DNA of 64,000 nucleotides, from contig NIVC01001646.1 in NCBI GenBank assembly GCA_002269645.1, positions 1 through 64,000 on the forward strand, read 5' to 3'. The notes beneath the pieces are model-generated. The model searched no databases. It was not told where the DNA came from and worked only from the letters and a program-made list of their open reading frames with translations. Below, piece after piece: positions 45,704 to 54,882 of the stretch. The position numbers and the translations under genes are program-made. Each line of letters begins with the position of its first letter. Position 1 is the first letter of the stretch. This DNA comes from Macrostomum lignano (lineage: Eukaryota).

Positions 45704-45980
45704 GCTATCTACCATCTATTGCCAGGACCTTCACCGGAGCGGTTACGAAAATTAGATTTCTCGGTAGTTGCACGTACTCTTTTGCACTACTTGAGTAGTC
45801 TGATTTTCGTTCGGCATGGCTGGTTCCAGCAGGTAGTTCCTCTGGATAAAAGCGCTTACCGCGCCCATTGGCTTTCCAGCTGCCTTAATCGTTTCCGGTG
45901 ATCTTGTGTGTGTGCATTCAGCTTGATTGGCTGCGGCAAGCAAGCTCGAAAGAGCTCGCTTCGCTCGCTCTTTCTCGCTA
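45704..45980 (-). mobile_element. GATA-microsatellite-embedded short interspersed element, copy A (longer copy)
   Basis: 45704-45929 is the exact reverse complement of 54534-54759. It is flanked on both sides by TATC repeats and has an extra approximately 50 bp containing the hairpin AGCTC-GAAA-GAGCT. Confidence 0.75.
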
Positions 45981-46624
45981 TCTACTATCTATCTATCTAT
46001 CTATCTAGCTATCTATCCTCAACGGCAATAAATCAATCAATCAATCAATTAATGCATGTTTAATCACCTACCAGAAGCTACTTACAGCAGGTCTAAGCAA
46101 CCAGAAGGGACAGTTTTCCCATTTTGCTGTTGGAGCAGCCTAGGGGAGAAACACGAAATTTCCATAAAAACGATTCTTCAGAACAAATTTTCAGAGAACT
46201 CAGCAGCGAGCAGCTTTCGCTCAGAACTGGTCAAACACACAGTCTTGGCAGCAAAATTCGATTTCAATGTCAATGCCTTTCAGAGTCCGGAGGCCCGTCC
46301 TCAGCCCGCTGTCTCCGTCCAACAGTTCAAACAGGGGGGGGGGGGGGACACGCAGCCCCGAGGCCCAGCTGACAACTCGCCGACTTTATTCAGCGCATGG
46401 TGTTTGCACTGCCACCCCCCCTGCCCCCAGCTTCCGCGATGGGGCATGTAGGCGGAGCGGCTTTCGGACTGAAATTTGGGCCCTAGAAAAGAAATCAATT
46501 GTTCCTCATCGCAGTCATCGACTCAGTGCAGCTGGAGAGGGGATTTTTGGGGATTTATGGTGCCGCGTGACAAACTGCCGAATTTGAGGATTAAAATCCA
46601 TCTGGTTCTCGCAGAACTGAAATA

Positions 46625-46695
46625 CTGCAATAGAAAACTGCAATAGAAAACTGCAATAGAAAACTGCAATAGAAAACTGCAATAGAAAACTGAAA
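46625..46695. repeat. 13-bp repeat (AAAACTGCAATAG), about 5 copies
   Basis: Direct inspection. Confidence 0.9.
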
Positions 46696-47498
46696 GTTGC
46701 CGAAACGCGGATTAATGTTGATGAGGCTAACAATATTTTTAAACAGAGACTTGCCTCGCAGCCTGAACTGCCCGCAGGGACTTGACCTGACCCGGGGAGA
46801 CTGTGCGCTAAGCTGATGGCACTTTGAAGGGGAGGCAGAGGCAGCGGACAAGAGTGAAAATAGAGAAAAAAACCTGACTCAAGAAGAGCCTCTGTCGCTT
46901 TTCTGTCCGCTTCCTCCTCTTTCTGTTGGAGCACAATTTTTTATTGCTCTTTCTGACACACTGGGGAGATGGGAGAAAACTTTACTTTGGCGTGCACTTG
47001 TATTTGGGCAAAGAATGGAGTTTGATGATGAGCAAAAGCTGGAACTGCATCGGGGGGGGAGTCCGTTAGCCGTCGGACTAGCTCATAACGGGCCATAGAG
47101 ATCATTAAAAATGATAGGACGCTATTCAATATCTGTGAGAGGGGGGCTGGCGGCAGGTGGTGAGGTCGCATCACACAGTCTTCCCTTATGCGAACGATAA
47201 AGACTCAAGTGACATCTCAACTGTTCAATAAGAAGATTAACCAAGCAGCCGCAGTGTCGGCTCAGGTTTTTTATCAGATCGGGGAGCGGGCAACAATATA
47301 CCAAGCAGCGGGAACGCTAATTCCAATATATCGAGCGGGATTAAGAAGTAGACGGGTCTCAAGCTGACTGTGCGGGCGGTGACGTTGGGGGGGGGGTAAT
47401 TAACCCTTTCCACCCCTGGTGGCAGCGGCGGTGGACCGGGAATCAGTTGGAGGGGGCGGGAGAAAAAAATGCCTCAGTCAACCCCTCAGACGAGTTAC

Positions 47499-47699
47499 GT
47501 AATCTGGCAGGGGTCCCCCTGGCCGAGACGGGGGCGCCGTTAGTTGGACCGGCATTCCTGCCTGCCCGTCTCTTGAATGTCTGAACGGGCAGTTAGAGGA
47601 GAAGGAGGGCTGGTGGCGCGACGCAGGACATTCCAGAGTGGACGATTGGTTTGATTGAGAGACTGGGAGACTTGGGGGCGAGGGGTCGGACAGTCTCAG
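47499..47699 (-). CDS. Candidate additional cytoplasmic exon of the protocadherin (67 codons, phase 0/0)
   Basis: Open Ser/Pro-rich frame LRLSDPSPP...GPLPDY between a CAG acceptor (weak pyrimidine tract) and a GTAACT donor. Phases are compatible with the neighbouring exons. Confidence 0.4.
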
Positions 47700-47794
47700 C
47701 TGACCCATCCGTCATTTTTGGGCTGAAGAAAAATGCTCCCCGCCGGCCCAAATGAATAACTCTTCCCCATCATTGACAGGTTGGCCAGCCTCAC

Positions 47795-51585: not shown

Positions 51586-52358
51586 AATTCCCGGCGTGTC
51601 TGAAAGGCGGCGGCAGCAGGGAAGCTGTTGATGATGATGTTGATGATGAAGATGATGCAGATGATAGCAAATAGGCCGTCTGGCTTGGAACTAAACAGAA
51701 TCTCTGTGGGTGGCCCTAATCCGCTCCTCCAGCCGCGGATTAGCAGAGAGAGAGAGAGAGCTTCACTTTCCCTACCCCCCGCCCGGACCCGGCCTTCTAA
51801 TTATTGCTTTTGGTAGTTATTGGTTTCAATATCTGCCGCTACGCACCTCCGCCCCCTCCCCCATCTGTGCCTTCCTGCCACAGCCCGGGCGGTCCGTAGA
51901 ATTCATTGATTAAAAGCATTTTTTTCAATTGCACGAATAAGGAAGTCGCAAGTCAGTTGTGAGAGAGCGCCAGAATAAGGAAATTATGCAGCCCCTCGGA
52001 CAGCAGGTGAGATCAAGTGCTGCCTGGCCGAGCTGCAGAATTTGCCTGCAAAGCAATCAACTTGTATAGCGAGTGTAGCTGTGCGTGAACGGACGGCCGG
52101 GGGGGAGGGACTGGCCGGAGGGAGGTGTCCGAGCGACCAATTCAGGTCAAGAAACCCGAAAAGTTGAGAGCGAAGCGCCTTTAAAAACTCTATCCTTTTC
52201 TCTATAACTCTCTCCCATGTACGCCACTTAGTCTTTCAAATCTCAATGGGTGCTTGAAGCTGAGGGGCACCTTCGGCTTCGGCGGGGATAACTGGGATTG
52301 TGAGGCACCGGTGAAGTTCCCAGGTGCTGCGGCAGCAGCTTGACCCCGCGAGCTCGGC

Positions 52359-52370
52359 TGACCTTGACCT
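52359..52370 (-). promoter_or_regulatory. Perfect DR0 nuclear-receptor element (AGGTCAAGGTCA)
   Basis: TGACCTTGACCT on the plus strand, 774 bp upstream of the protocadherin ATG. Another AGGTCA half-site lies at about 52144. Confidence 0.35.
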
Positions 52371-52388
52371 GCCTACTGCAGCAGAATG

Positions 52389-54525
52389 TTAGATAGATAG
52401 ATAGATAGATAGATAGATAGATAGATAGATAGATAGATAGATAGATAGATAGATAGATAGATAGATAGATAGATAGATAGATAGATAGATAGATAGATAG
52501 ATAGATAGATAGATAGATAGATAGATAGATAGATAGATAGATAGATAGATAGATAGATAGATAGATAGATAGATAGATAGATAGATAGATAGATAGATAG
52601 ATAGATAGATAGATAGATAGATAGATAGATAGATAGATAGATAGATAGATAGATAGATAGATAGATAGATAGATAGATAGATAGATAGATAGATAGATAG
52701 ATAGATAGATAGATAGATAGATAGATAGATAGATAGATAGATAGATAGATAGATAGATAGATAGATAGATAGATAGATAGATAGATAGATAGATAGATAG
52801 ATAGATAGATAGATAGATAGATAGATAGATAGATAGATAGATAGATAGATAGATAGATAGATAGATAGATAGATAGATAGATAGATAGATAGATAGATAG
52901 ATAGATAGATAGATAGATAGATAGATAGATAGATAGATAGATAGATAGATAGATAGATAGATAGATAGATAGATAGATAGATAGATAGATAGATAGATAG
53001 ATAGATAGATAGATAGATAGATAGATAGATAGATAGATAGATAGATAGATAGATAGATAGATAGATAGATAGATAGATAGATAGATAGATAGATAGATAG
53101 ATAGATAGATAGATAGATAGATAGATAGATAGATAGATAGATAGATAGATAGATAGATAGATAGATAGATAGATAGATAGATAGATAGATAGATAGATAG
53201 ATAGATAGATAGATAGATAGATAGATAGATAGATAGATAGATAGATAGATAGATAGATAGATAGATAGATAGATAGATAGATAGATAGATAGATAGATAG
53301 ATAGATAGATAGATAGATAGATAGATAGATAGATAGATAGATAGATAGATAGATAGATAGATAGATAGATAGATAGATAGATAGATAGATAGATAGATAG
53401 ATAGATAGATAGATAGATAGATAGATAGATAGATAGATAGATAGATAGATAGATAGATAGATAGATAGATAGATAGATAGATAGATAGATAGATAGATAG
53501 ATAGATAGATAGATAGATAGATAGATAGATAGATAGATAGATAGATAGATAGATAGATAGATAGATAGATAGATAGATAGATAGATAGATAGATAGATAG
53601 ATAGATAGATAGATAGATAGATAGATAGATAGATAGATAGATAGATAGATAGATAGATAGATAGATAGATAGATAGATAGATAGATAGATAGATAGATAG
53701 ATAGATAGATAGATAGATAGATAGATAGATAGATAGATAGATAGATAGATAGATAGATAGATAGATAGATAGATAGATAGATAGATAGATAGATAGATAG
53801 ATAGATAGATAGATAGATAGATAGATAGATAGATAGATAATAGATAGATAGATAGATAGATAGATAGATAGATAGATAGATAGATAGATAGATAGATAGA
53901 TAGATAGATAGATAGATAGATAGATAGATAGATAGATAGATAGATAGATAGATAGATAGATAGATAGATAGATAGATAGATAGATAGATAGATAGATAGA
54001 TAGATAGATAGATAGATAGATAGATAGATAGATAGATAGATAGATAGATAGATAGATAGATAGATAGATAGATAGATAGATAGATAGATAGATAGATAGA
54101 TAGATAGATAGATAGATAGATAGATAGATAGATAGATAGATAGATAGATAGATAGATAGATAGATAGATAGATAGATAGATAGATAGATAGATAGATAGA
54201 TAGATAGATAGATAGATAGATAGATAGATAGATAGATAGATAGATAGATAGATAGATAGATAGATAGATAGATAGATAGATAGATAGATAGATAGATAGA
54301 TAGATAGATAGATAGATAGATAGATAGATAGATAGATAGATAGATAGATAGATAGATAGATAGATAGATAGATAGATAGATAGATAGATAGATAGATAGA
54401 TAGATAGATAGATAGATAGATAGATAGATAGATAGATAGATAGATAGATAGATAGATAGATAGATAGATAGATAGATAGATAGATAGATAGATAGATAGA
54501 TAGATAGATAGATAGATAGATAGAT
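52389..54525. repeat. (GATA)n microsatellite, about 2.14 kb, nearly perfect
   Basis: Only one visible interruption (GATAATAG at about 53838). Confidence 0.98.
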
Positions 54526-54533
54526 ACACAGAT

Positions 54534-54882
54534 CAATCAAGCTGAATGCACACACACAAGATCACCGGAAACGATTAAGGCAGCTGGAAAGCCAATGGGC
54601 GCGGTAAGCGCTTTTATCCAGAGGAACTACCTGCTGGAACCAGCCATGCCGAACGAAAATCAGACTACTCAAGTAGTGCAAAAGAGTACGTGCAACTACC
54701 GAGAAATCTAATTTTCGTAACCGCTCCGGTGAAGGTCCTGGCAATAGATGGTAGATAGCGATAGATAGATAGATAGATAGATAGATAGATAGATAGATGG
54801 ATAGATAGATGGATAGATAGATAGATAGATAGATAGATAGATAGATAGATAGATAGATAGATAGATAGATAGATACACAGAT
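54534..54882 (+). mobile_element. GATA-microsatellite-embedded short interspersed element, copy B (5'-truncated, with (GATA)n tail and TSD-like duplication)
   Basis: 226 bp identical to copy A, followed by an approximately 110-bp GATA tail. TAGATACACAGAT is duplicated at 54521-54533 and 54870-54882. Confidence 0.75.

Follow-up and report, generated by a model that had tools for sequence, protein, structure and literature searches.

Sequence, boundaries and setting of the two copies

The window analysed here is the first 64,000 nucleotides of contig NIVC01001646.1 of Macrostomum lignano, from the PacBio/Canu assembly Mlig_3_7 (GCA_002269645.1) of the DV1 line. It contains a short, structured, non-coding sequence in two inverted copies, copy A and copy B, each beside an array of the tetranucleotide GATA about 2 kb long. 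The first three exons of a protocadherin-like gene lie between them. We find that this locus records one, possibly two, insertions resembling those made by target-primed reverse transcription (TPRT), the second copy apparently being derived from the first.

In copy A, the stretch 45704-45929 is the exact reverse complement of 54534-54759 in copy B (226/226). The initial annotation of this DNA had proposed this pairing, and the identity proved to be even longer than it had claimed, reaching into the GATA repeat as far as 45665 and 54798 for a total of 265 bp. On the side of the body, similarity between the copies ends abruptly at 45930/54533. The copies are 8.6 kb apart. Copy B had been described as about 50 bp shorter than copy A, and we found that A extends 45 bp further (45930-45974). 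Copy B is shorter at this one end only and keeps the other, as judged from two copies whose shared end includes the flank of A. There are no terminal inverted repeats at the ends of the element, all of its inverted repeats being internal. Neither BLASTN (word size 7) nor nhmmer revealed a third copy, even a diverged one, when run over the window plus 17 kb of a second contig, NIVC01001647.1 (~81 kb together). A larger, ancient inverted duplication was also considered and was rejected: there is no similarity outside the 265 bp and the arrays, and the long arrays differ internally.

Each copy has GATA arrays to its left and to its right, as had been proposed. We mapped four of them, namely (ATCT)518 at 43629-45703, about eight impure units at 45993-46017, (TAGA)534 at 52390-54526 and (GATA)31 at 54760-54883, and the window holds no others. 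Both copies (2/2) are found in GATA arrays and every GATA array in the window adjoins a copy, a correspondence between two copies of which B depends on A. The 518-unit array beside A could be either a pre-existing target array or an expanded tail. Variant units within it (a CTTATC deletion, TTTATC, AACT, TTTC and CCATC) recur with a period of ~377-549 bp, forming a higher-order repeat. This recurrence indicates that the array grew by the duplication of large blocks and not by slippage alone.

Flanking duplications and the origin of copy B

The sequence TAGATACACAGAT occurs exactly twice in the 64 kb, at 54521 and at 54870, and these positions are the two junctions of copy B with its tail. The 13-bp direct duplication previously reported around copy B and its GATA tail is accordingly present and unique to both junctions. 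An extra ACACAGAT directly follows the 3' duplication (54883-54890). Ahead of this duplication, copy B has ~27 GATA units, in which tail and GATA target are indistinguishable.

We also found a duplication around copy A that had been missed earlier. The body of A is flanked by a direct repeat, hereafter T, with the sequence TCGCTATCTAC(C/T)ATCTAT, at 45702-45719 and 45975-45992. The two occurrences are identical over 11 nt and match at 17 of 18 positions. T departs from a regular GATA stretch by a one-base deletion and an inserted C. These changes were seen at none of the 27 internal variant sites of the 518-unit array, and the window has just three occurrences of TCGCTATCTAC, one to the left of A, one to the right of A and one in B. 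Because the changes in T are absent from the variants of the array and TCGCTATCTAC is confined to these three places, copy A appears to have been inserted into a GATA array with slight impurities, duplicating 11-18 bp of its target.

The graded end common to both copies, GCAATAGATGGTAGATAGCGA, contains the target-site duplication of copy A, variant base included. This bears on the initial annotation, which had taken the shared graded end for the fixed 3' end of a family; the end is no evidence for that, as it includes A's own duplication. The presence of A's duplication in GCAATAGATGGTAGATAGCGA argues that copy B was copied from locus A together with its flank, or was converted by A. Judged by its sequence, B derives from locus A (or from its allele or homeolog) plus the flank of A, or was converted by A later; it did not reach its site independently from some remote master copy whose 3' end is fixed. 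B depends on A, and there may have been just one independent insertion event. Of the earlier proposal, the insertion architecture gains from these results, in that both copies, not B alone, have duplications and a stem-loop lies near the tail; the step from this architecture to a family is weakened, since the shared end is the flank of A.

Conversion by A would mean that A and B were independent, older insertions of one GATA-seeking family and that gene conversion later homogenised them, along with T and part of the array. We regard this as improbable. The identity does stop where homology stops, at the truncation point of B and inside the array, each copy has a flanking duplication of its own, and both lie in GATA arrays. 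However, two rare steps would be required, the conversion tract would have to span all 265 bp with zero differences left, and the account presupposes a family that is so far hypothetical. Table 1 lists the features of the locus.

Table 1. Features of the two copies, their flanks and the intervening gene (window coordinates; strand of the element or gene)
Feature	Position	Strand	Remarks
Copy A body, 255 bp, non-coding	45720-45974	-	Bases 45720-45929 common to copy B
5' extension, copy A only, 45 bp	45930-45974	-	Contains small GNRA-type hairpin, 45937-45962
Copy B body, 210 bp	54534-54743	+	Reverse complement of 45720-45929; 5' end 45 bp shorter than in A
Internal imperfect hairpin, 66 nt, stem ~27 bp	45745-45810 (copy A), 54653-54718 (copy B)		z -6.1 on + strand, -4.0 on - strand (copy A)
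Direct repeat T, 3' side of A	45702-45719	-	TCGCTATCTACCATCTAT on + strand; non-periodic variants of GATA array; also in copy B
Direct repeat T, 5' side of A	45975-45992	-	TCGCTATCTACTATCTAT on + strand
Repeat T from the 3' side of A, as present in copy B	54744-54761	+	Variant base included
Target-site duplication of copy B, 5' copy, 13 bp	54521-54533	+	TAGATACACAGAT
Target-site duplication of copy B, 3' copy, 13 bp	54870-54882	+	TAGATACACAGAT
Long (GATA)n array, ~518 units	43629-45701	-	3' of copy A, as the element is oriented
Impure GATA stretch, short, on the 5' side of A	45993-46017	-	Taken as edge of target array
Long near-pure (TAGA)n array, ~534 units	52390-54520	+	5' side of copy B; single indel variant at 53839
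GATA tail of copy B, ~27 units	54762-54869	+	Two GATG variant units, 54799 and 54811
Protocadherin-like gene, exons 1-3	47795-51585	-	Between both copies; ATG at 51585, signal peptide, six cadherin repeats, transmembrane segment
Next predicted exon, protocadherin-like gene	36940-37087	-	Polypyrimidine-CAG acceptor and GTGAG donor, both phase 0; exon linkage inferred

Folding and coding potential of the element

The 291-nt unit folds far better than shuffled sequences on both strands (z -4.0 and -5.1). Its internal 66-nt hairpin ends ~25 nt before T and the GATA tail in element orientation. On copy A's plus strand, all four transition mismatches of this hairpin pair as G-U, and for this reason the fold is much stronger there (-30.7 vs -19.5 kcal/mol). 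The hairpin resembles a microRNA precursor and has no matching Rfam family. A second hairpin, in the extension of copy A, had been pointed out before; it is real but modest (-23.4 kcal/mol, z -3.3 on the minus strand). At 45860-45935 (minus strand), in the 5' part of the element as oriented, two motifs, AGCCAATCA and AGCCAATGG, resemble CCAAT boxes and could represent a putative internal promoter. The truncation point of copy B cuts the first motif.

ARAGORN found no tRNA, and Rfam searches over 43000-56000 returned no family at E ≤ 1, with no head of tRNA, 5S, 7SL or small nuclear RNA type. Together with the inverted-repeat analysis, these results agree with the earlier statement that the element has neither a tRNA head nor terminal inverted repeats. 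A retrozyme reading was set aside, as no hammerhead was found. The plus-frame-2 peptide of the element has no relatives among 5.8 billion proteins and its 78-aa minus-frame-0 peptide none among 1.84 billion representative proteins, which excludes conserved coding sequence. The protein collections searched contain almost no M. lignano DNA, and these negatives do not bear on copy number. Two 26-29-mers of the element had 0 exact matches in JGI metagenomes, and six 20-mers had no match in full-text literature.

A Pfam scan of the open reading frames (ORFs) of at least 150 aa outside tandem arrays in the window, apart from four overlapping alternate-frame ORFs (49144-49809, 50053-50514, 50195-50893 and 51151-51603), revealed no reverse transcriptase (RT) or endonuclease (EN) domain. 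The only Pfam matches were to a kinase, cadherin repeats and a RhoGAP exon.

The initial annotation had offered a microsatellite-initiating element of Helitron type as its alternative. Such an element, whether of the Helitron/HINE type (mini-me, MINE-1) or a miniature inverted-repeat transposable element (MITE), would have seeded the microsatellites itself. The hairpin near one end of copy A and the association with a tetranucleotide array would suit it, and there are precedents in MINE-1 helitrons at GAAA repeats and in Micron MITEs (PMC3812793). The junctions largely refute this idea, however, and we consider it very improbable: flanking duplications are present, of 11-18 bp at A and 13 bp at B, there is no 5' TC, no 3' CTRR end and no terminal inverted repeat, and the hairpin-bearing end is missing from B. 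A Helitron would be expected to leave no target-site duplication and to have its hairpin 10-12 nt from the 3' end, and a MITE to have terminal inverted repeats beside a short duplication.

Host gene and contig context

The third exon of the protocadherin-like gene ends at a phase-0 donor at 47795/47794. Over the equivalent tail exons, a 1146-aa minus-strand gene is annotated on NIVC01001647.1. On NIVC01001646.1 the gene (32558-51585, minus strand) is unannotated; it has small exons, and its introns are packed with minisatellites with periods of 4-46 bp. According to our exon predictions, copy A and its 2-kb array probably lie inside an intron of ~10.7 kb of this gene, in sense orientation. Relative to the gene, copy B is antisense, and it is found 2.9 kb upstream of the ATG. 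The inverted identical copies, each beside an array of ~2 kb, thereby bracket exons 1-3 and could promote inversion or hairpin formation.

The DV1 line has extra chromosome copies, and the M. lignano genome is highly repetitive and partly redundant, with 13% tandem repeats, 1.66% long interspersed elements (LINEs) and 0.39% short interspersed elements (SINEs). In the window, 38 merged tandem arrays make up 38% of the sequence, which is in line with the tandem repeat content of the genome. NIVC01001647.1 carries the kinase of the window in reverse and, over the 17 kb compared, is 94-97% identical to the window, with minisatellites placed as they are there. Because of this identity and the matching positions of the minisatellites, we take this contig, on sequence comparison, to be a paralogous or homeologous copy of the window. 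Although their positions are conserved, the tandem arrays differ in length between the two contigs; a 33-bp array at 30072-31215 of the window, for example, is about twice as long on NIVC01001647.1. An intronless gene for a 650-aa protein kinase (26854-28806, plus strand) is identical on the two contigs. At 2020-2667 (minus strand), early in the window, is the RhoGAP-domain exon.

In a genome of this kind, the assembly could have been mis-joined through the GATA arrays, and the repetitive, partly redundant sequence, the extra chromosome copies and the tandem content of the genome and window all make such an artefact conceivable. The details of the locus make it highly unlikely. Copy B has unique junctions at either end, with a particular 13-mer in common with the unique flank outside them, the copies are separated by 6.4 kb of unique gene sequence, and chimeras from missed adapters give full palindromes, not an arm of 265 bp.

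Two target-primed reverse-transcription events as the favoured origin

We favour, with a probability of about 0.5, an origin by two TPRT events, in which copy B was made from a read-through RNA ending in the GATA repeats downstream of A. Copy A would be a retroposon-like sequence, short (at least 255 bp) and non-coding but with a strong fold, either SINE-like or the 3' end of a LINE. It would have been inserted by TPRT close to one edge of a (GATA)n array that already existed and was slightly impure, duplicating the 11-18 bp of T, and the predicted empty site is ...GATAGATAGTAGATAGCGATAGATAG... Locus A would then be the parent of copy B. Transcription in the sense of the element, which is the minus strand of the window and the sense of the protocadherin pre-mRNA, would have given an RNA that ran through the 3' end of A into T and GATA. 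The GAUA-repeat end of this RNA would have paired with a GATA-like site (TAGATA...) that had been nicked, where the second array, 8.6 kb away, has its edge, reverse transcription would have stopped 45 nt before the 5' end of A, and a second nick 13 bp away would have produced the TAGATACACAGAT duplication. The predicted empty B site is (TAGA)n-TACACAGATACACAGATGCTG. This account links what is directly observed, namely that the copies match exactly, that each is flanked by a duplication, that B contains T and is truncated, and that the element has hairpins, through a proposed RNA intermediate, read-through, annealing of tail to target and a GATA-tailed LINE that would supply RT and EN.

Copy B appears to have the full signature, with a 13-bp duplication, a repeat tail at the 3' duplication and truncation at the opposite end only, and the junctions of copy A seem to fit TPRT likewise. 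Both duplications include non-periodic bases and start with GATA-like bases on the side where the tail would anneal, and that of B starts with TAGATA, which matches the tail. The T and GATA units inside B are as expected of read-through transcripts, and co-transcription with downstream target has been described as an integration guide for target-specific LINEs (PMC4494074). By analogy, the stem-loop ~25 nt upstream of the tail would fit the 3' ends of LINEs and SINEs with microsatellite tails. Copy A would also lie in sense orientation within a transcribed intron, and M. lignano carries both LINEs (1.66%) and SINEs (0.39%).

Several points weigh against TPRT. Only two copies were seen in ~81 kb, with identical sequences and a distance of 8.6 kb between them. 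Retrotransposition is not known to prefer nearby sites. The scanned ORFs of the window contain no RT or EN, the open frames of the element have no protein relatives, and neither ARAGORN nor Rfam found an RNA polymerase III head. Inside a microsatellite, tail and target are inseparable, and the 66-nt hairpin folds better on the opposite strand. DNA-level copying predicts the flank of A within B equally well, and the spacing and identity fit a purely local event, such as the local duplication that the initial annotation had itself set against its proposal.

The presence of A's duplication inside B fits a read-through retrocopy and DNA-level copying alike. Under the second of these, the main rival, copy B would have arisen locally with neither RNA nor retroelement machinery, which we consider less likely than TPRT. 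A break at the edge of (TAGA)534 would have been followed by strand invasion or template switching into the inverted array at A, by synthesis out of that array through T and 210 bp of body, and by rejoining, with re-copying or fill-in giving the 13-bp duplication. The two copies are close together, inverted and 100% identical, there is ~2 kb of GATA homology at each locus, B includes the flanking T and array of A, no other copy was seen in ~81 kb and no RT was found nearby among the scanned ORFs, all of which suit this account. It has more difficulty with the junctions. A clean 13-bp duplication with a tail-like start is expected from staggered endonuclease nicks, not from template switching, and the body-side junction has no microhomology. 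The long arrays differ internally, and hence are not recent copies of each other. Moreover, the duplication flanking A still demands at least one true insertion event, whichever way copy B was made.

Under the favoured reading by TPRT, the pair would be a parent and daughter caught at zero divergence. A wider claim is that M. lignano harbours an undescribed, currently active, (GATA)n-specific family without long terminal repeats (non-LTR), which spreads via read-through RNAs whose target-derived GATA ends guide integration and which helps in the birth or growth of kilobase GATA arrays. We put this forward only tentatively and consider it unlikely as a whole. If such a family exists, a tetranucleotide target, GATA, joins the short list of those used by microsatellite-specific retroelements, and the locus offers a clean parent-daughter case in which integration is guided by 3' ends derived from the target, and does so in a genome with 13% tandem repeats and a poorly characterised repeat library. 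If there was only a local duplication, the pair amounts to a common type of structural variant and is of minor interest beyond this locus.

Comparison with known systems

LINEs of the stringent type and their partner SINEs in the L2/CR1 clade, such as eel UnaL2 and UnaSINE1 with their (TGTAA)n tail, have a 3' stem-loop and a microsatellite tail. The M. lignano element resembles them in its stem-loop before a putative short-unit repeat tail, apparent 5' truncation, variable target-site duplications and a tail that could anneal to the target. It differs in that the unit is GATA, the arrays are kilobases long and no partner LINE, RT ORF or family is shown; the likeness drawn here is one of arrangement.

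Templated inverted insertions made by fork stalling and template switching (FoSTeS), microhomology-mediated break-induced replication (MMBIR) or synthesis-dependent strand annealing (SDSA) normally come without a clean 13-bp target duplication. They share with copy B the short range, the inverted orientation, the co-copied flank and the repeat homology at one junction, but they leave the duplication around copy A unexplained. The locus likewise has features of a DNA-level segmental duplication, in that T and the array are co-duplicated on one side, yet a 13-bp duplication bounds B.

Among non-LTR elements specific for microsatellites are Waldo (ACAY), Mino (AC), Kibi (TC), Koshi (TTC) and Dong (TAA), and crocodilian Tx1 families target (TTCC)n or (TTTC)n (PMC3812793, PMC4494074). 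No GATA-specific element is described in either of these papers. The two copies here are likewise associated with a single type of microsatellite, lying within it or at its border, and in the same orientation relative to the repeat. Whereas the known elements are autonomous, with an APE endonuclease and RT, and were recognised from numerous copies that all occupy a fixed position in the repeat, we have a pair of short non-coding copies, of which one derives from its partner. L1 3' transduction and co-transcription of the R1/R2 type (PMC4494074) are alike in that the daughter carries the downstream flank of its parent, here T and GATA, and this flank is target sequence that could guide annealing. 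The present case differs from them in having no poly(A), a microsatellite as the transduced flank and an RNA intermediate that is inferred. Set beside these systems, the pair is at most an addition to kinds of element that are already known.

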